64,000 nucleotides of DNA, from positions 657,944,001 to 658,008,000 of the forward strand of contig NC_067398.1 of the NCBI RefSeq assembly GCF_016432865.1, given 5' to 3'. Shown one piece after another: positions 1 to 52,622 of the stretch (the stretch's first letter is position 1; every line of letters starts with the position of its first letter). The DNA is from Antechinus flavipes (taxonomy: Eukaryota). Both the position numbers and the translations under genes were made by a program. Under the pieces are notes generated by a model. That model saw only the letters and a program-made list of their open reading frames with translations. It was not told the origin of the DNA and searched no databases.

Positions 1-257
1 CAGAAATAACACAGATTTCAAACTACATTAACTTGGAAGGTGATGATATTAATAATTATTGAATCAGGTATCATCCTCACCATCATCAATTGATGTAGTT
101 AGTCAACATGCAATAGAGGCACAACAGAAATCAGGACATTTTAGGGAGAGGCAGGTTTGGGGTGAAGAGAATCATATCATTTTTGTACAGGCAAACCAGC
201 TTCCTAAAACCTAAGTGGATCAACATAAAAAGAGATTGGGAACATTTCCTTAAATCA

Positions 258-405
258 NNNNNNNNNNNNNNNNNNNNNNNNNNNNNNNNNNNNNNNNNNN
301 NNNNNNNNNNNNNNNNNNNNNNNNNNNNNNNNNNNNNNNNNNNNNNNNNNNNNNNNNNNNNNNNNNNNNNNNNNNNNNNNNNNNNNNNNNNNNNNNNNNN
401 NNNNT
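258..405. other. Assembly gap
   Basis: N run. Confidence 1.
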
Positions 406-501
406 GACTTGCCCAGGGTCATCCAGCCAGGAAGTGTTGTGTCTGAGGCTAGATTTGAACTCAGGGCTGGTGCTCTATCCACTGCACCACCTAGATGCCT
501 C
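406..501 (-). mobile_element. WSINE1-type tRNA-derived SINE fragment running into an N-gap
   Basis: tgacttgcccagggtca...ctatccactgcaccacctag consensus segments. Confidence 0.75.
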
Positions 502-1320
502 CGACATATATTTTTTAGAGTCCTAAGATTCCCATTTCCTTTACCCTTGGGGAAACTTCAGCCAGAGAAAGGAAGAAATCAGCTCTTCTCTTTATGTTCC
601 CTTTTTCCAAATGGCTAGAAGGAATGCAGATCAAACATAAGGAAGGGGAAGTTGAGCAAGATTGTTCTGAAGCTGGGCATGAACCCAAAGCAGAGCTACC
701 CGAGGCAGCTCAGATAGAGCAGACCAAGAGTGGGCATGCCAGTGCAGACCAGACAAAGCCAGGCTGAGTTTTCAGCTGGTTGGGCCACGGCCACTAATAT
801 TGCCAGCACAACTGATGAGATACTGAGTAACTAGGTGGGACTGACAGAGAAAGACCAAAATATTGAAGGAATTATTCCTTGGGACAAGCATGGAAGCGCA
901 CTGATGTGATCAGTTAAACCTTAAAGTCCTCCGGGGAGTTCAGGGTAGCCCCACCTTGCTATATCCAGTTAAAAATATGAGTTATTTCAAATCTCCAAAA
1001 TTAAATCTGTCCATGGCTCCTGCCATCTTTGCTGAACCCCTTTTGAGTTACAGCCCACCACAACACTCTGCCTTATGGTGTGTTTTCCTTCCCCTTCCCC
1101 CATGCCACGTGAGGGGGAGCCTCCTCCTCTCATCACCCCTTCCCCATGTGTCATGGTGTCTTTCTCCTTCTTATAACTAACTAATTCTTTTAAGCTGCTA
1201 AACTCCTCTATTAGATCTAGCCTGGCAGTTAAGGGCATGCTCCCTTCTCATGGAGTATATCCTTACTCCTGTTACTTGTGAGTTCCACTAGTAAACTTGT
1301 CTTTTCCATCATTAATTGTT

Positions 1321-1490
1321 GGGGTTTTTTTGTTATTATTGTTTATTTGTTTTTGCTGAGGCAATTGGAGCTAAGTGACTTACCCAGGGTCACATAGCCA
1401 GGAAGTGTTAAGTGTCTGAGGCAACATTTGAACTCAGGTCCTCCTGACTTCAGGGCTGGTACTCTATCTACTATGCCATCTAGCTGCCTC
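1321..1490 (-). mobile_element. WSINE1-type SINE with 18-bp TSD
   Basis: Full SINE body and T-rich tail. tttc(c/t)atcattaattgtt at 1303-1320 and 1491-1508. Confidence 0.85.
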
Positions 1491-1876
1491 TTTCTATCAT
1501 TAATTGTTAAAACTCTTTTCCTTGCTAACTGTTGCTTTCCCAACTCTATTTTATATTTACTATTCCTGGTTTCTATTATACCCCTTCATTTTGTCTGAAA
1601 TCTTTTCTCTTAAATAAACCTACCTTTTGCCAAAAAGAATGGCCATTGTGAATTCTTCATATGATCAAACATGATTCAGTGCCTGATGTTAACCCTGAAC
1701 ACAAACTTTGGCTTCCCAAGACATATCACAATGAGATTAGGCAAACTGCAATTCAAAGATTCCTTCTTCCCTTTTCCCACAGAGTATTTGCTGAGGAATT
1801 ATATCCCATTCATGCTAAAAACCTATGCAATATTTTTCTTTTCCATCCCCAAATCCCAGCCTATATTTGGAAAGGA

Positions 1877-2004
1877 NNNNNNNNNNNNNNNNNNNNNNNN
1901 NNNNNNNNNNNNNNNNNNNNNNNNNNNNNNNNNNNNNNNNNNNNNNNNNNNNNNNNNNNNNNNNNNNNNNNNNNNNNNNNNNNNNNNNNNNNNNNNNNNN
2001 NNNN
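1877..2004. other. Assembly gap
   Basis: N run. Confidence 1.
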
Positions 2005-2099
2005 TCCCACTTATCTTCTTTTTCATCCTAAATGGATTAATTTTGTTTAAGCAAAATCTTTTCTATATTTATATAATCAAAAGAAATTCTCTAATAGAT

Positions 2100-4900
2100 A
2101 AGTGATCAAAATATAAATAAGTTTCTCTTTTTTCATTTATTAATTGTTTTGTTTTTCTGGTTATGCATGAATATTCTTTTTTTGATTTTTTATGAATCAC
2201 ATTGGTAGAGAAAAATCAAAACAAAAGGGAAAAACCATGAGAGGAAAAAAAAGTGAACATAGCATGTGTTGATTTACATTCAATCTCCACTGATCTCTTT
2301 CTGGATGCAAGTGGTATTTTCTACTCAGAATTTATTGGAATTGCTTTGGAACCCTGAACTACTGAGAAAAAACAAATCTTTCATAGTTAATCATCACAGT
2401 CTTGCTATTACTGTATACAATATATTCCTAGTTCTGCTTGTTTTGCTCAGCATCAATTCATGTAAATCTTTCCAGGTCTTTCTAAAATTAGTTTGTTCAT
2501 CATTTTTTATAGAAGAATAGTATTCCATTACTTTCATATTCCATCACTTATTCATCTATTCCCTAATTGATGGGCATCTACTCATTTTCCAATTCTATCA
2601 CAAAAAGAGGTGCTACAAACATTTTTGCACATGTGGATCCTTATTTCCTTAGGATACAGATCCAGTAGTTACATTGATGGGTTAAAAAGTATGCACAGTT
2701 TGATAGCCCAAAGGACATAGTTCTAAATTGCTCTCCAAAATGCAACTCCACCAACAATGCATCAATGTCCCAGTTTTCCCACACCCCTTCCAACATTTAT
2801 CATTATCTTTTCCTATCATCTTGGTCAATCCAAGAGATGTGAGGTGTTACCTCAGAGTTGAACAAATTTCTCAAGAATTGAAAACTATTAACAATTATAT
2901 AAAAGAATGTTCCAAATTACTAATAATAAGAGAAAAATAAATCAAAACAGCCCTGAGGTTTTGCCTCATATGCAGCAAAATAGCAAAAATGGTGAAAGAT
3001 GGGAATAATCAATATTGGAGGGGCTATTGGAAGGCAGGCACATTAATAGATTGTTAATAAAGTTGTGAAGTGGTACAATGGAAATCAATTTGGAACTATG
3101 CAAATAAAGTGATTAATGTGCTTATAACTTTTGACCCAGAAATTCCATAATTAGGTTTATTTTCCAAGAAGGTCATTAATAAGAAAGTCAACATTTTATG
3201 TGTTTACTATTATTTTAAGGAATTAATAAATATTTTCAAATTTTAACATTTTAAACTACTAATATAGTAAATATTAATAGAGGTAGCTCGATGGTGCAGT
3301 GGATAGAACGCCTTGGTTCCTGAGTCAGAGAGTCTCTTCCTGACTTCAAATTTGGCCTCAGCCACTAGCTTTGTAACCCTAGGCAAATCATTTAACCATA
3401 TTTGCCTCAATTTCCTCATCTGTAAAATGAGATAAGGAAATGGCTATCTTTGCCAATAAAATCCTAACTGGGGTCGTGAAGAGTTGGACATGACTAAAAC
3501 GCTGGACAACAAATATTAAGAGATGTAACCCATATCCAAAAAACTCTTTGGAGGATTCTCAATAATTTTTAAGGGTGCAAAAGGGTTCAGAAACCAAAAA
3601 TTTTAAGAACTGCTGAACTTTAATCCAATCTATGTTCAGCTGGAGGAGAAAGAGACTACAAAGGCTATTCAGCATTGATCGGAGAGCCATCTGGTGGCCA
3701 AACAATGTATTTATTTTTCCCCTTCCTCCCACCTTTCTTTTTTTTAAAAAAAAAAAAAAACTATTTAAAGAATTGACTGTTCACATGACAGCCTGATGCT
3801 CTCTGTAATACAGAAATCAGAGGAAAATAAATTCACTAATTGGTACATTTCTAACACTAGCACCATACTACACCCTGTCATAAAATATTAACTTTAAGTC
3901 AATACAGCATTCATTTAAAAAAAAAAAAAAATCCTGCAAGAAATGGAAGATGCAGATCTGGAGCCCAGGGAGAGAAATATGATTGGGAATCCTCTATACA
4001 AAGGTGATTATTGAAGTAAAAGAATAGATGGAAAATATCATGGGTGGTGAGCATAAAACCTTTGAGGACATTTATATGTAAAGAACTAGAGGACAGGTAT
4101 CCTATTGGGAGATGGCTAACCAAATTATGGAATATATATATAATGGAATATCACTGACCCACAAGAAATGATGAAATGGACAATTTCAGAGGAATTGAGG
4201 AATCAAGTTCATGAACTTGATTTAATAGTACTCTTTGGTCCTTTGATCTTTGTGGGGGACCTGGGTCAGAAAATCCTGAATCTTCTGGCTTTGGACAACC
4301 ACCCACCACCTACCCTTAATTCGCCTGGAGATTACTCCTCAAGCCACCACCCTCTACCTTAATTCTCCAGGAAATTACTCTTTAGACCACCACTTTCTAC
4401 CCTTAATTCATCTGGAGAGCTATCCCTAGCCCCAAGCTACAGAAGGCTAAATAAAATTGAACTCTGTCTCTAAATTCCCTGCTACTTTCCTAATCAGGAT
4501 CTTAGCCCACTAAGAGAACCCTCAATGTGAATAAATCCTCTTTTGCCAACCTTAACTTGGAGCCGGGGACTGCAAATTCTTTTGCAAAACTTGCAACACC
4601 TGTCTGGAGACCCCCAAACACTGTTAGGGTGTCTCATCCCTCAACAAACTGATATAGTGCCAAGTGAACAAAAGTGAGAGAACAATTTCTACAATGACAT
4701 GATAGGGAGAAAAAATGGTTTTTAGACTTTAGGATTCTGATCAACCCAATGAGGAACCATAAATCCAAAGGAATGAAAGTGGAAGGACTAAGGAATGTGT
4801 AGTGACGGAGAAGGCAAGGGAAACTGGAATCCCAAAAGCGACAGTTAATTGCCACATGTGGAAGAGAGTTACTTGGAGATCACGGAACCGATGAGCAATG
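2100..4900. mobile_element. Degraded L1 3'-end fragments in both orientations plus a MIR-like SINE (about 3280-3510)
   Basis: Typical marsupial L1 3' UTR phrases (catcaattcatgtaaatcttt, gatgggcatctactcattttcc, ggaaatcaatttggaactatg). CORE-SINE motif ctcatctgtaaaatgag. Confidence 0.65.
4218..4646 (+). mobile_element. Solo LTR (429 bp, ERV1-like) inserted in an L1 remnant
   Basis: TG...CA termini, exact 4-bp TSD AACT (4214-4217, 4647-4650), internal AATAAA. Removing it restores the L1-like catgaactgat. Contains three copies of an approximately 40-bp repeat. Confidence 0.8.
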
Positions 4901-5284
4901 GGATGAACCAAGGTTGGACTTTAGCAGGGTCAGAAGTCCGGAAGCATCAGAAAATGAGGGATGTGGTGTCCCCGGGGGAAGTTAGGCCTCGGACACACAC
5001 AGACATATTCTCAAAGTAAGAAGCGCACATCTTCCTAGGCACACAGTGCTCACACACACACTTCCAAAACCAAACACACACAGGGAGATTGTGTCGGGGA
5101 CTCTGGATTCAACCCCCTATTCTGCCTCTGTGTAACCTTGGCAATGAGCTGTCCCTTTCTAGTCCCATCGGTAAACCAGGACTAGCTAGGTTGTAATTCC
5201 GTTCTGGTCAATCCCTAACCAGTTCCTACCCTGACTGATTGAAAGGAATAAAAGAGGTAAAGGGGGAAGGCGGGAGAAATGGGG

Positions 5285-5490
5285 CAGATCGGTTGCCATT
5301 GGCCGTAGCTGGTGGCGCCCACCCAATCAGCAGCCTCTCACCCCGCCCCTTACTGGTCCAGGAATGCGGCGCGCAGAAGCTAACGGGCAGGTGCAAGCGC
5401 CCGTGACATCCCGGCAGCCCGCTAGGTTTTCGCTGCGGCCCATACCTGAGGCCTGGACCAGACAGACCGGGGCCCAGTTTCAGGGTGAGC
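5285..5490 (+). promoter_or_regulatory. CpG-rich promoter and probable non-coding first exon of the PLPP3-like gene
   Basis: ATTGG 5298-5302, CCAAT 5323-5327, GC box CCCCGCCCC 5341-5349, local CpG enrichment, strong donor AGG|GTGAGC at 5484/5485. Candidate acceptors at 6672 and 6684 lie just upstream of the ATG at 6703. Confidence 0.55.
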
Positions 5491-6702
5491 AGCCAGATCC
5501 AAATCACGTATCGTTGAAACATATTCTGGAAACTGAATGGAACTGGGGTTGGATGTATACTAAGGGCACACCCTGAGCTCCGATCCTTGCCCAGGCCGGA
5601 CACAGCCCTCCCACCTTCGGGCATCGCCTGGGCCCAAGCTCCAGCCTCAGGACCAACCCAGCCCCCAATACCCAGTTTCAAATCCAGCCTTCTCCTGGGC
5701 TCCACACCTCCAAATCCAGACCCTTCCCAGCTCCTGGCCCATCCCTGTGCCTGGAAAGTACACTGCTCTTAAACCAGGGAATCCAGATTTGAATCCCGTC
5801 TATTTACTGCCTGTGTGACCATGGGCAAGCCACTTCTCAATGGCCCTTAGTTTTCTCTTCCTGTGAAGAGGCTGGAGCCTTCCTTCTAGTTTATAACCAG
5901 ATGGCCTTCTGGCCCTTACCTCCAGACATTACCCCAACCCAACTATTAGCTTCTAGATCCATCCCTCCAGATCTGACTCAGTCCTAGACACCAAAATTAC
6001 TCGGGCCCTTCCAGCTGTGAACTTTTGTCTTCAAGCCCAAACCCCAAAAGCCCAGGGAAGGATGATCCCCAGGAACCTTCTTTCCTTTATCATCCTCTTT
6101 TCCTTTTCTCCCTACTCTTGGCTAAATCTTTTGGCCTGGACTTACAGGTCCTTGATAAAAGTGCCTTTTACCAGCTCTCTTCCCCTCCCCCCACAGTAAC
6201 TCAACAGTTCATCCCTTCCCATCTATCCTCTTGATGTTCTGTGGTTCTTTCCTCAGTGTCACCTCCAAAGTCCCCTTCCTCTTCAGCTTTCCCTCCCTCA
6301 CTTTCTGCATAATATTTCTGCCTTCAATATTTCCCAGGGCTTTGTACTCCCCCTACACATTATCCCCACATGGATGACTCAAGGTTGAACCAGCCTTCAC
6401 TCTCTCCCTCAGTTCTATCTCCACCCAACTGGACCCAAAGCCTTCCCTCCTCTGTTCTCTGCCTGTCTCTGCCTGCCTGGAACATCTGAACTTGACCAGT
6501 GTCCAGGGCAGTTGACCCAAACCCTTTACTCTTCCAGTCTCCACCAAAAAGAATAGGGTAAGAAGGGCTGTCATGTTAGCATTCCCACACTTCACCCAAT
6601 CCACAAGGCCCTTGGGCAACCTATCCCCCTACTCTGGAAGACAAGCAGGTGCCCCTTTTAAATTGGTTTTAGGTAGGACCTCAGATTCCTTTCACTGTCT
6701 TC

Positions 6703-9700
6703 ATGAGCAAGCCAGAGTTTGAAGAGCCAGACTGCCAGGTTTTGGCCAAGCAAGAGTCCGAGCATCAAGTCTGGCCTGAGGACAGACACACAGACCAAGT
6801 GACTGCTCAAAAGAACAGTTCATATGCCCATGGCTACAATAAGAAATTACTCTTGGTGGACCTGATCTGCATCCTTCTGGGTAAGTCCATTGGCCAACTG
6901 AAGGCTGAAGTTCAAGGATAGGGTCACAGGAGTAGGTCAAGCATAGCAGGGGGTTCTTCTTTTGGGAGAGGGGCTAGAATGTAGCATGAGCAGCTTTATA
7001 TAAAGTTCCTCAGGCCTAGGGAGCTCAGGAATGAGTTCAATATCCCTTGTTCCTCCTTTCTGCTTCTGACCTGGAACACTTGTAGACCTGTGTGTAGGTG
7101 AAGGGCAGCCAACAGGTCTGGAGGGTGAATGAACAGGAGGAGTCACCAGTAATCTGGCTCACCTCCACCCCAGGTTCTACTCCAACTCTTATTTGTTGTA
7201 GCAAGGCAGAAGAAAACTAGATTGGGAGTGGGAGAAACTGGGTTTTTATATCTGCCCCACCAATTATTTACTAGGTTCTTAGGGAAATCATATTGCTCTC
7301 TCTGGACCTCAGTTTCTCAAGTGAGTAGACTGGACTAAATGATTTTTAAGGGCTTTATGGTTCCAAATCCTGTAGTCTCATTAATGACTCCTTGTTCCAA
7401 TTCTTTCCCCCACTCCCACTGGTCAGGTATGTCACTTTGCTTGGAAGGGTGCAGAGCAACTCCATGCCCACAGCCCTACATCTAAGGATTCCATCAGAGG
7501 AAGAAACTGGGACCAGTCACCTTAGTGTACAATTCAAGTTTTCCAGCCATGTACCAGCTCCTGACACATATTTTTGAGCTGGTGACTCTCTGGAGGAGGT
7601 CAATATGTATTATGAACAAGGAATTCTAGGACAGCCCAAGACCCCCTTCTTCCATGTCATACCTGTCTCAAAACACACCCTGACACAATTACAGAAACAC
7701 TCACTTCCACAAGAGAATCAGGGGCTCACACCCCTGTTTGGATGCTCACAATCCCAGACTTTTTCCCAGCACCAGGAGGGAAACACAGGCCAGACTACCC
7801 TTCCATTCCACCTTCAGAGAGCAGAAAGACAGCCAGAATAGTGACCATATTATCATCCCTCATAACTTCTGGTCAGAGTCTGGGCCATTGAGACCCCCTT
7901 CCCTAAGGCTTTCCCTCATCCCATGTTGTAACAAGAAAAACCTGGGAACTATCTTTTCAGGAAAGTTGGATTTCTTCCATGCCCCTCCCTGCCCTGAACA
8001 TGTGCAGCTCTAGACCTTCATCTTGTGTGATAATTTAGGAAATCACTGGAAATATTGTTCTATTTCCTAGTCTTCATTCCCTTCTTCCTGTGTGAGGCAA
8101 ATATCATAGACCCCATCCATGTTGGCTTCTTCTGCGAAGACAGTAGCATCAAATACCCACTAAAAGTTCCGACCATTGACAAAACAATCCTCGCCTGCAC
8201 CGGCCTTTTCATCTCCATCACCTCTGTAAGTGGGGAAGGGAGAAGGAGCACTTCTTAACCAATGCCCTTCCTTTCTCTAGGCCTTGGTTTTGTCATCTGC
8301 AAAATGTTGGGGTTGAAAAAATTTATTGCTAAGGTGTCTTCCAACTCAACTAGTCTCATACCCTAAGGTCCTTTCTAGCTCTGATATTCTATGAATATCT
8401 ATGCAACCAGGCCCAACAAATAAAATATACAGCATCAATTCGTTCCTCAAAGCGCTATCACATAGTTGAATCTGAAGTCAAAATCTGACCTCCAATTCTT
8501 GCTAGTTCTGTCATCTTAGGCAAGCCATTTACCCTAATCTGTTTTCTCATTTGTAAAATGGGGGAAATAATAGTATTTTTCATTTCTATATTAATTTAAG
8601 ATAGAACTTTCTCAACCCCATGAGGCACATCATAGTAGTATTGAGCCTTAAGGGATTAAATGAGATAATGACAGAATAAGTTTTGAAAGTACTTTATAAA
8701 ATCAACATTATTACTCTTTCTTTGGGTAAGAGAAGTCCCAACTCTCTGGACTCAAGAGTCAGAAAGACCTGAATTTGAATTCTGCCTCAGATACTTATTA
8801 GCTATGTGATACCAGGGGAATTTTTCTGTGATTCAGTTTTCTCGGAGGATAATACCACCTCCCAAAGTTGTGAAGATCGACTGAGACATGTAAAACTTTG
8901 CAAATCTTAAAATGCTGTAAAAATGCTTGTTCTTATTATTCAGAAAATTGATCTTTTTTCTGGCAACATGAGAGATCCTACTTTTTTTTTTTTAATGACT
9001 AGCAGAAACTTGTCATTTTCTTGATCAATGAGGAAAGTTCTATATTTTCCCACACATCAAAAATCCTACCTTAGGGAAGGGGCTTGTAGAGGGAATCTGG
9101 CCTTTACCCCCACCTAGATGGAGAAAGATGTCAGGCTTTTGCCCATCCCTCAAATGGAACAAGAGCCATCATACATATGGATGATGCTGGGGGAAGTATG
9201 TAATTAAATTAACTGCCTGATTTCAACTCCTCACATTCCCAACTTTGATTTCAATGGATTCAAACTAGGTTTCCAAGATAGACTCTTACAAATCTGTCAG
9301 AAGCTTAGGGAGGATAATGGGTCTCTTGGGACAAAGTGGGTAATGGATTCAAATGCTGCCACAGATCATCCTGGGAGAATTACAGTGGTTACGCTTTCAG
9401 GAACTGACCTCACCAGTGCTGCTGAGCAGCACCTACATGACCATGCTCTATAGAGAGCTGAGTGCCTTCTTCTTTGGAGTCGCTGTGAATCAGTCTTTCA
9501 CCAGTATTTTCAAGATTGTCACAGGTCGCCTTCGCCCCAACTTCCTGGATGTGTGCCAGCCAGCCTACTTGCAATGCAGCATTGGCTATATCACCAACTA
9601 TAGCTGTACTGGGGACCCAATTGAAGTATCCAGGGCCAGGTAAGGGGATACTGCCAGCTAGCTTGGGAAAGAGTGGAGGGGATGGAGTCTGTAGAGAATA

Positions 9701-10939
9701 GTCATTCAAATGGGCAATTGGGTTATAATGGGAAAGGCACTAGACTGGAAGTCACAAGATCTGGATTCAAGTCCCAGAGTCCTTAGCCTTGAGCCTTCTA
9801 GATTAGACATTCAATGTTCTGTGTCCTAAGGACTCTCCTCACTCATATGTTTCCTGATTTAGTAGATGGCTTCTTGCTCTGATCATAGGTGTTTTACTGT
9901 TCTGTGATTTGTTTGGGGGTATCCATAGCAAAGACTGCCGTAGAAAGTCTTGTATTCCAGCATCCTTTAGGATTTGCATTTCATTAGCTGCCCCTCTTGC
10001 CTACCACTGCAGGAAATCCTTCTTTTCTGGTCATGCTGCCTTCTCTATGTACTGTGTGATCTATCTGATGGTGAGTATCTGTGAAAGGAAGAATGGGAGG
10101 AGGCCATGGGTCTGCACAGAATCCAAAGATGATTCCATTGTGCTCCCAGAGAGAGGCTGTGGAGCTGAGCACAGCATGGCACAACCCAAACAGAACTGGC
10201 TTTTGTCACCCAGGCAGCCTTTGTCTGGGAAGCCAAGCAGCCATGCCAGGTCATGTGAGAGTAGTGGGACAGGCAAAAAGCCAGAATCCAGCCCTCTGGG
10301 AGGGCTGGGCCTCTTATTGTCCCTCTACCTCCAGCTCTACCTGCAGGCTCGAATGATTTGGAAGGGGTCCAAATGGCTCCGGCTCATGCTTCAAACTATC
10401 CTTATACCCTTGCCCTTGGTGGTGGGCTACATTGGAGTTCAAAATTATTGGCATCATCTTTCAGACATATTCGCTGGCCTTTTACAGGGGCTGATCACAG
10501 CCTTGTGGGTGGTAAGTTCCACCCTTAGGGAAATGGGAACATTAGGGAGCCCCAGATAGTTGTATGAGGATTCTAGTATAGAAAAAAGGATGACCTGACT
10601 GGGACTTGGAACCTTGATATGTGATCTTGAGCAAATTGCTTCCTCCCTGTGAAATGGAGTTTGTGGGGTTGGTGATAAATGGTAAAGCATTCTGAAGTGA
10701 TGAGAATAGGCAGAGATCAGGAAAGAAAGCTTAGGACTATCCCCACCCATAATTCTGGGAGGGATCTGGGACCTTAGATGCCAGAGGTAAGACTGGAATA
10801 GAGAACACACTGCCTTAGTACACCCTTCTTTCCACAGGTCTTCTTTATCTCGGATATATTTTCTTCTGAAAAGTGCTTGTCTTCAGGCTCTTCCTCCTGC
10901 TCTGAAAACCAGGCTTCAAATGAACAGACTAGTTGCTAA
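6703..10939 (+). CDS. PLPP3-like type 2 phosphatidic acid / lipid phosphate phosphatase (PAP2 family) paralog, 314 aa, 6 coding exons
   Basis: Exons 6703-6880, 8071-8225, 9365-9639, 10013-10070, 10335-10511, 10838-10939 (945 nt, phases 1,0,2,0,0). All introns are GT-AG and there is no internal stop. Translation contains DLICILLVFIPF, GFFCEDSSIKYPLK, KIVTGRLRP (C1), RKSFFSGHA (C2), LYLQAR..WKG, HHLSD (C3) and VFFISDIF. These are collinear with PLPP3 as recalled, and the 58-nt and 177-nt exons match it. Divergent termini and the genomic position argue against the PLPP3 ortholog. Confidence 0.9.
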
Positions 10940-11662: not shown

Positions 11663-11668
11663 AATAAA
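11663..11668 (+). terminator. Candidate polyadenylation signal of the PLPP3-like gene
   Basis: AATAAA about 720 nt after the stop codon at 10939. Confidence 0.5.
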
Positions 11669-13310: not shown

Positions 13311-16190
<2,880 letters not shown>

Positions 16191-19252: not shown

Positions 19253-19436
19253 NNNNNNNNNNNNNNNNNNNNNNNNNNNNNNNNNNNNNNNNNNNNNNNN
19301 NNNNNNNNNNNNNNNNNNNNNNNNNNNNNNNNNNNNNNNNNNNNNNNNNNNNNNNNNNNNNNNNNNNNNNNNNNNNNNNNNNNNNNNNNNNNNNNNNNNN
19401 NNNNNNNNNNNNNNNNNNNNNNNNNNNNNNNNNNNN
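19253..19436. other. Assembly gap
   Basis: N run. Confidence 1.
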
Positions 19437-20258
19437 TGTCTCTCTAGAACAACATAATTGGAACATAGGTCGGTTGGAATAAATCCAGTGTTGTTGGCCA
19501 CTTCGGATACCTGCAGTTCTGGGAACAGGAACCTGGTCTCTGGTTCTGTCCATGTCCAACAGCTGCCGGCTTCCTGACAAATCTATCCCTGGTATCAGAA
19601 TTGTGGTGCTGTGTGCATGCTCATACTCACTGTTTCTCCCCATGAGGAACAGGAAATGATGGGAAGGTACGTGTTTATTTGTGTATCTCTTAAGTACCTC
19701 ATTTTGTGTTTCTCCCCACTATATAACTCAAGACTCCCTCTAGTGGTCTTCCTGTGCTTGGATGGTGAGTTGTCCGAAAAGGCAGTGGGAGGAGGGACGG
19801 AGGAGTAGGGATAGAGAGATGGAGGAATAGAGGAGGATGAAGGAAGCCGGAAGAAAGGGAGGGAAGGAAGTTCTCTGGACAGGTAGGAGAATCTCAGTAA
19901 ATCATTTCCAAGGAACTATAGAAATTCAACTAGCAGGTGCCCAACTTTGCCCAAAAGGTGCGATGCTGGCCTCCAGTTACTTCAGCTCTGATCTGGACCC
20001 AGAAACTACTCCTCAGTCCCACTTCCTCATGGGGGAGACTAGGAGGCAGTGTGCTTGGGTTCTGTAAAGCTAGCAAGGGAGGGGAGAGTTGTCTCCGGGG
20101 GACGTCACCCAGCAGACTTCCTCTCTAAGCCACACAGGAAGAAGAAAAGGCCCAGCACCCAGCACCCCTGGCTCATTGCCTCAGCACGGGCCCCTGTAGG
20201 GACCCTCAGGGACATCTATCCTGGCCACATTGTGCTGCACCCATTCAGCAGGGGGACC

Positions 20259-39187: not shown

Positions 39188-46765
<7,578 letters not shown>

Positions 46766-49591: not shown

Positions 49592-52622
<3,031 letters not shown>

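Follow-up and report, generated by a model that had tools for sequence, protein, structure and literature searches.

Does the PAP2-family gene that lies upstream of a TUBB4A-type beta-tubulin gene in Antechinus flavipes encode a fourth working lipid phosphate phosphatase beside PLPP1, PLPP2 and PLPP3, or a protein that has outlived its catalytic function? The gene occupies positions 6703-10939 on the + strand of the window, i.e., of the whole 64,000-nucleotide (nt) stretch analysed (NC_067398.1, positions 657,944,001 to 658,008,000), and all coordinates below are positions in this window. An earlier note on this DNA had presented it as an intact, easily missed PLPP3-like gene, kept in marsupials, lost in eutherians, and possibly orthologous to the fish gene ppap2d. 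The analysis described here confirms the gene and supports the orthology, and it changes other parts of the picture: the Antechinus gene is most readily understood as a ppap2d orthologue under weak constraint, the product of which is a PAP2 membrane protein that is probably no longer catalytic.

The gene model was rebuilt by script from the window sequence. Six coding exons, separated by introns that all begin with GT and end with AG, give a spliced coding sequence (CDS) of 945 nt (178/155/275/58/177/102 nt), which is translated without interruption into 314 amino acids (aa) and a stop codon. When the protein is aligned with the platypus orthologue, the exon borders of the two coincide, so that all five introns correspond. 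The gene is thus a real, intron-containing one, as had been claimed, and a retrocopy is ruled out by five introns at ancestral positions. The rebuilt product is identical, residue for residue, to RefSeq entry XP_051827704.1, "phospholipid phosphatase 3-like [Antechinus flavipes]"; RefSeq thus already contains the gene, under exactly this model.

Exon 3 was searched against 1.84 billion cluster representatives, and the cluster members were then looked up. RefSeq models were found for Sarcophilus harrisii (devil; 314 aa, 92.7% identity to the Antechinus protein), Sminthopsis crassicaudata (dunnart; 313 and 309 aa, 87.5% identity), and Notamacropus eugenii (tammar; six isoforms, 306 aa, 71% identity), and for Vombatus (wombat) this gene was represented by a UniRef fragment only. 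With models in four marsupial genera, the gene can hardly be called easily missed. The full protein matches Pfam PAP2 with 77.1 bits (gathering cut-off 27.2, E=1.4e-21), and exons 3 and 5 each match the same family separately. An AlphaFold2 model computed from an alignment of 51 sequences reached a predicted template-modelling score (pTM) of 0.75, with a predicted local distance difference test (pLDDT) of mostly 84-97 over residues 50-290 and with disorder in the N-terminal residues 1-42 and the C-terminal 16. In a Foldseek comparison with the human PLPP1 electron cryomicroscopy structures (9l0i, 9l0o, 9l0u), the model gave template-modelling (TM) scores of 0.88-0.89 and superposed with a root-mean-square deviation of 2.7-2.8 Å over approximately 250 residues; a sequence search of the PDB placed PLPP3 at the top (25qp, E=8e-74), ahead of PLPP1 and PLPP2 (approximately 1e-55). 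The modelling shows that the sequence remains compatible with the six-transmembrane fold of lipid phosphate phosphatases, a compatibility that does not in itself prove function.

The relationships of the gene were determined from a wide sample of jawed vertebrates. A query with a "PLPP3-like" protein from frog returned a large family of proteins of 300-330 aa from frogs, caecilians, turtles, squamates, platypus, echidna, lungfish, coelacanth, bichir, gar, teleosts, and cartilaginous fishes. The records bear one of two names, "phospholipid phosphatase 3-like" or "phosphatidic acid phosphatase type 2D", and in many of the species a canonical PLPP3 exists as a separate protein. In a maximum-likelihood (ML) tree of 60 proteins, with PLPP1 as root, the 35 rows of the 2D/PLPP3-like type formed a single jawed-vertebrate clade (support 99/96) with PLPP3 as its sister (94/94). 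The Antechinus protein falls within this clade, together with fish ppap2d, and outside that of PLPP3, and the proposal of a fourth subfamily member distinct from PLPP3 is upheld. The six marsupial rows were monophyletic (100/100) and joined with four eutherian rows (99/98). Constraining the therian sequences to PLPP3 cost 18.2 log-likelihood units and was rejected by the approximately unbiased (AU) test (p=0.014); constraining them to the monotremes was not rejected (p=0.24). Canonical PLPP3 proteins of Vombatus and Macrotis (bilby) cluster with sheep PLPP3 at 90% identity, and to judge from these sequences marsupials possess both genes, canonical PLPP3 and the ppap2d type. The taxonomic spread of the clade indicates that the duplication is older than the divergence of cartilaginous from bony fishes, in keeping with an origin by whole-genome duplication.

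The position of the gene agrees among mammals. In Sarcophilus, Sminthopsis, and Notamacropus the PAP2 gene is followed on one strand by a 445-aa tubulin gene and a DENN-domain gene, as in the window; in platypus a 319-aa orthologue lies upstream of a 444-aa tubulin, so that the adjacency the earlier note had suggested examining was found in devil, dunnart, tammar, and platypus. Among eutherians, Mesoplodon densirostris and Galeopterus variegatus carry a PAP2 model between a TNF-family gene and a 444-aa tubulin, and Muntiacus reevesi carries one upstream of the tubulin. Because marsupials, platypus, and eutherians share this PAP2-tubulin order, the gene must have held its position next to the tubulin since before the monotreme-therian split. 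In turtle and gar, there were no neighbouring genes within 10 kb of the ppap2d-type gene.

The eutherian copies were examined by searching the beaked whale (Mesoplodon), colugo (Galeopterus), and muntjac (Muntiacus) loci with the Antechinus, platypus, and Thomomys proteins by use of tblastn. The whale copy changes frame within exons 2 and 5; in the muntjac copy, motif C2 in exon 4 is interrupted by an in-frame stop. Exons 2-5 of the colugo copy are open, and exon 6 was not found at the colugo locus by this search. Further eutherian models are available for Choloepus (295 aa, named "PLPP1-like") and Thomomys (321 aa). Eutherians, on this sequence evidence, did not simply delete the gene; it has decayed in at least two lineages. 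The view that it was kept in marsupials and lost in eutherians is therefore not supported on either side: homologues are present at the same locus in whale, colugo, and muntjac, at least two of them broken, and the gene is also kept in monotremes, turtles, squamates, amphibians, lungfish, coelacanth, ray-finned fishes, and sharks. As a side observation, the public gene model of the muntjac splices past the in-frame stop in exon 4, and that of the whale reads through intron 4 and ends early after the exon 5 frameshift; in both cases the lesions are masked.

The active site was assessed by scoring the three PAP2 motifs C1 (K-x6-R-P), C2 (S-G-H), and C3 (S-R-x5-H-x3-D). In PLPP3, His251 and Asp255 of C3 perform the nucleophilic attack, His199 of C2 aids cleavage of the phosphate from the substrate, and Arg245 of C3 is needed for activity, the R245C exchange causing loss of function (PMC13500480). 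All non-therian proteins of the 2D type keep the catalytic residues, with S or T preceding the C3 arginine. Every marsupial copy has lost at least one essential residue, and the residue lost differs. In Antechinus (C2 SGH; C3 IG.....H...D) the Ser and Arg of C3 are replaced and its His and Asp kept, and the Gly aligns to Arg245 of PLPP3; in Sarcophilus (SGH; FG.....H...D) the C3 Arg is likewise replaced by Gly. Sminthopsis (SGD; FR.....H...D) has exchanged the C2 His for Asp, Notamacropus and Vombatus (SDH; LK.....Q...D) the C3 nucleophile His for Gln, and the marsupial-type fragment P0002 (SDQ; IQ) both the C2 His and the C3 Arg for Gln. In eutherians C2 reads SE followed by Q, H, or N, or else SVD. 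Since the essential residues lost differ among lineages, catalysis was apparently no longer needed from early on, in the ancestor of either marsupials or therians. The Mg-independent lipid phosphate phosphatase activity of the Antechinus protein is predicted to be lost because the equivalent Arg245 of PLPP3 is required, and the marsupial protein very probably does not work as a phosphatase. The earlier description of an intact gene accordingly holds for the reading frame and the splice sites and fails for the enzyme, the active site being eroded in all marsupial copies.

Selection on the open frame was estimated from the CDSs extracted for Sarcophilus and Sminthopsis, which were compared pairwise with each other and with Antechinus. 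All exon borders and all ten splice sites are kept among them; the sole exon indel is one in-frame deletion of 3 nt, and there are no frameshifts or stops. The ratio of nonsynonymous to synonymous substitution rates (dN/dS) was 0.33-0.37 by the method of Nei and Gojobori (NG86; bootstrap upper limits 0.56-0.71) and 0.50-0.53 by that of Yang and Nielsen (YN00) and by ML; the YN00 bootstrap gave upper limits of 0.83-0.96, with at most 1.2% of the replicates reaching 1. Introns 1, 3, 4, and 5 contain 9 indels of a length not divisible by three versus Sarcophilus and 16 versus Sminthopsis. At the intron rate, 4.0 and 7.2 frameshifting indels, respectively, would be expected in the CDS, in which none was observed (P=0.018 and P=0.00075). 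The dN/dS check proposed in the earlier note thus gave ratios below 1, and no disabling mutations, for the three dasyurids covered.

The values also show that the purifying selection on the protein is weak. Exon and intron divergence are close to each other (4.7% vs. 6.4% for Sarcophilus, 7.9% vs. 7.5% for Sminthopsis), and dS lies above the intron rate, so that dN relative to the introns is approximately 0.5-0.75. The long stem branches in the tree agree with this: 0.49 changes per site on the therian stem and 0.88 on the marsupial stem, with end branches of 0.007 for platypus, 0.003 for echidna, and approximately 0.02 for each of two marsupial PLPP3 proteins.

Taken in order, the following history is considered likely. 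A paralogue of PLPP3, ppap2d, arose before the jawed vertebrates diverged, and its place directly upstream of a TUBB4A-type tubulin gene goes back at least to the last ancestor shared by living mammals. Outside therians it has kept all catalytic motifs and evolved slowly; on the therian stem its rate accelerated and erosion of the active site began. The marsupial protein would have little or no lipid-phosphate phosphatase activity, as its motifs suggest, and the gene has nevertheless stayed open and correctly spliceable under weak purifying selection. Its role would most likely be a non-catalytic one, either in binding lipid phosphates without hydrolysing them or as a regulatory subunit in oligomers of PLPP1-3. 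The eutherian counterpart is decaying in at least two lineages. More specifically, ppap2d may have become a pseudo-phosphatase already in the therian ancestor. Marsupials may have retained it over tens of millions of years because it took on a new role (e.g., in binding lipid phosphates or in regulating PLPP1-3 tetramers as one of their subunits), while eutherian lineages are losing it one after another; this extended version is put forward tentatively, as one possibility among several.

Several observations weigh against a retained non-catalytic protein. The non-catalytic role is itself something that we infer throughout. The loss of activity is read from motifs only, and Antechinus retains both histidines and the aspartate, so that residual or altered chemistry is possible in this species. 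The closeness of exon and intron divergence and the elevated dS, given above, count on the same side. In the best tree the therian sequences stand outside the other tetrapod copies and not beside the monotremes; the tree program flagged the marsupial-eutherian join as two long branches meeting, and the odd therian placement is probably a long-branch effect. Among sequencing data, runs labelled as RNA contain only 5-9% of the region's words, and there is no RNA-labelled run among the runs listed for exon 3. For exon 3, two small runs of A. flavipes (71-73 M letters) contain 74-83% of the exon, and one run of a relative (210 M letters) contains 70%; all three are probably transcriptomes because they are too small for genome data, and they are not listed for the whole region.

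It is on this evidence that the main rival has to be judged, namely that the gene has been functionless ever since the active site was lost and that the open frame of the dasyurids is a remnant on the way to the decay seen in whale and muntjac. A dN/dS of up to approximately 0.5, exons that diverge nearly as fast as introns, catalytic residues that disappear in a lineage-specific manner, broken eutherian orthologues, and the sparse RNA-labelled runs would all be expected of a dying gene. Such a gene should also have accumulated frameshifting indels, of which the three dasyurids have none, and it should not have preserved every splice site or bootstrap upper limits of dN/dS below 1. A full-length model of 306 aa exists moreover in the tammar, the lineage of which separated from the dasyurids more than 50 million years ago. 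For tammar and dunnart, RefSeq gives several alternative isoforms, among them one that uses the acceptor equivalent to 10345-10346, and isoforms in RefSeq usually reflect transcript support. A dying gene is therefore considered unlikely.

Very unlikely, in turn, is the reading closest to the earlier note, according to which the locus encodes a fully functional fourth lipid phosphate phosphatase that is confined to marsupials and was cleanly lost in eutherians. The intact reading frame and splice sites, the ppap2d orthology, and the integrity of C1 and C2 in Antechinus speak for it; the replacement of Ser-Arg in C3 by Ile-Gly at the position of the required arginine, the loss of other essential residues in other marsupials, the presence of eutherian copies at the locus (which refutes it in part), and the retention of the gene in monotremes, reptiles, amphibians, and fishes speak against it. 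A dasyurid enzyme that is still active with shifted chemistry or substrates, another basic residue having taken over from the arginine, could be imagined from the presence of C1, the C2 His, and the C3 His and Asp in both Antechinus and Sarcophilus and from the detectable purifying selection. This is highly improbable in view of the loss of function of PLPP3 R245C (PMC13500480) and of Sminthopsis, in which the C2 histidine has gone, so that the active site is not conserved even within Dasyuridae. A translocated PLPP3, or a marsupial-specific duplicate of it, to which the RefSeq name "PLPP3-like" and the best PDB sequence match might point, is refuted by the placement of the gene outside the PLPP3 clade, by the AU test, by the canonical PLPP3 of wombat and bilby (whose presence makes the translocation fail), and by the same tubulin-adjacent gene in platypus and eutherians, and has practically no likelihood left.

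The features of the Antechinus gene are collated in the following table.

Features of the ppap2d-type gene of Antechinus flavipes (positions in the window)
Feature	Position	Strand	Remarks
Exon 1 (coding part)	6703..6880	+	ATG and N-terminal cytoplasmic tail to start of transmembrane segment 1 (TM1); ends in phase 1
Exon 2	8071..8225	+	155 nt; TM1, first outer loop, TM2; homologous exon in whale, colugo, and muntjac loci
Exon 3	9365..9639	+	275 nt; TM3 and outer loop bearing motif C1
Motif C1, KIVTGRLRP	9512..9538	+	intact; kept in all therian copies, broken eutherian ones not excepted
Exon 4	10013..10070	+	58 nt, with motif C2; 100% identical to Sarcophilus
Motif C2, S-G-H	10026..10034	+	intact in Antechinus; FSGH at 10023-10034 conforms to the family pattern (P/F)-S-G-H
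Exon 5	10335..10511	+	177 nt; TM4-TM6 region with motif C3
Degenerate motif C3, IGVQNYWHHLSD	10431..10466	+	I-G-x5-H-x3-D vs. expected S/T-R-x5-H-x3-D
Exon 6	10838..10939	+	includes stop codon
Candidate polyadenylation signal	11663..11668	+	first AATAAA 3' of the stop, 724 nt past it

Exon 1 aligns without gaps to Sarcophilus and with the single 3-nt in-frame deletion to Sminthopsis, the GT donor being kept in both, and the exon 3 product shares 89% identity with the Sminthopsis protein and approximately 50% with the eutherian copies. The ATG of the gene is preceded by an in-frame stop at a distance of 33 nt. The candidate promoter reported in the earlier note was not confirmed: neither a TATA box nor a single CpG was present in the approximately 500 nt upstream of the ATG (6201-6702). 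At the start of exon 5 (window 10335-10347) there are two acceptor AGs 12 nt apart; use of the second (AG 10345-10346) moves the start of the exon to 10347 and removes LYLQ (12 nt) in frame. The presence or absence of LYLQ is precisely what distinguishes the Sminthopsis RefSeq isoforms X1 (313 aa) and X2 (309 aa). Intron 4 (10071-10334, 264 nt) is free of stops and in frame with exons 4 and 5 (open reading frame 9909..10559), and its retention would add 88 residues. Of the introns compared with Sarcophilus, this one has diverged least (3.4%).

The tubulin, DENN-domain, and mitochondrial-carrier neighbours agree with the genes named in the earlier note. The last exon of the beta-tubulin gene is at 15117-16190; a DENN-domain gene follows near 25 kb, and genes for two mitochondrial carriers lie near 44 and 50 kb. 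Exons of the latter (44095-44526 and 50378-50749, + strand) are similar to each other and approximately 6 kb apart, which is consistent with the SLC25A23/SLC25A41 tandem pair. In platypus, the upstream side of the PAP2 gene, on which a TNF-family gene is found in whale and colugo, is occupied by a gene of the RNF220-like type (Pfam PF15926, 500 aa, minus strand; 1-3954 of the platypus locus). Human RNF220, like PLPP3, is located on chromosome 1p, and the RNF220-like neighbour may be another pair of the paralogon. In positions 1-6700 of the Antechinus window, no trace of a TNF-family gene or of an RNF220-like gene was found. Runs of N at approximately 1870-2000 and 19300-19500, visible as runs of X in the translations of the open reading frames, are assembly gaps or masked stretches, and a long microsatellite of the (CA)n type at 40512-40859 appears as an HTHTHT... 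run in a minus-strand reading frame.

Comparison with known proteins helps to define what kind of protein this may be. The ppap2d, 2D, or "PLPP3-like" proteins of non-therians belong to the same clade as the Antechinus gene. The best non-therian match of the Antechinus protein is that of platypus (49% identity), the gene for which shares both the six-exon structure and the place upstream of a TUBB4A-type tubulin; a C-terminal T-x-C ending is common to them as well (...QTSC in Antechinus, ...HTNC in turtle and platypus). The two groups differ in that the non-therian proteins have complete motifs and evolve slowly, those of platypus and echidna being nearly identical, whereas long branches and damage to C2 or C3 mark the marsupial copies. 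PLPP3 (LPP3), the sister paralogue, shares approximately 44% identity, the fold, and the motif layout with the Antechinus protein; the Antechinus gene belongs to another clade, lies at another locus, and is devoid of the C3 Ser-Arg, and marsupial PLPP3 is a separate and highly conserved gene. Human PLPP1 has a matching fold and differs as a catalytically complete protein and a different paralogue, the outgroup of the tree. The proteins of the PLPPR (PRG) family are membrane proteins with the PAP2 fold that have been retained without the essential catalytic residues and act without phosphatase activity. They were taken as the working model for the marsupial protein, a likeness that is functional only: the loss of residues in marsupials was probably independent, occurred much later, and took place inside the PLPP1-3 subfamily. 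A search of the paper library returned no study of the ppap2d paralogue or of its history, and the family is almost unstudied; in the four papers there that mention ppap2d it is an entry in gene lists, such as one for zebrafish, in which it is a marker of a quiescent radial-glia module.

For the family, the finding is a useful point of annotation and evolution and does not constitute a new kind of system. PLPP1-3 are treated as the full vertebrate set in the lipid phosphate phosphatase field because studies of human and mouse dominate it; the locus described here points to a fourth, equally old member, the active form of which, as judged by its motifs, appears to be kept by most vertebrates. 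The label "PLPP3-like" is misleading and is corrected by the orthology. If the pseudo-phosphatase reading is true, dead PAP2 proteins would have originated twice independently, once in the PLPPR family and once here. Mammals appear to provide a graded series, from a complete active site in monotremes through an open gene with an eroded site in marsupials to pseudogenes in at least two eutherians, and this series would allow the question to be asked of what maintains a PAP2 protein after its catalysis has ended.

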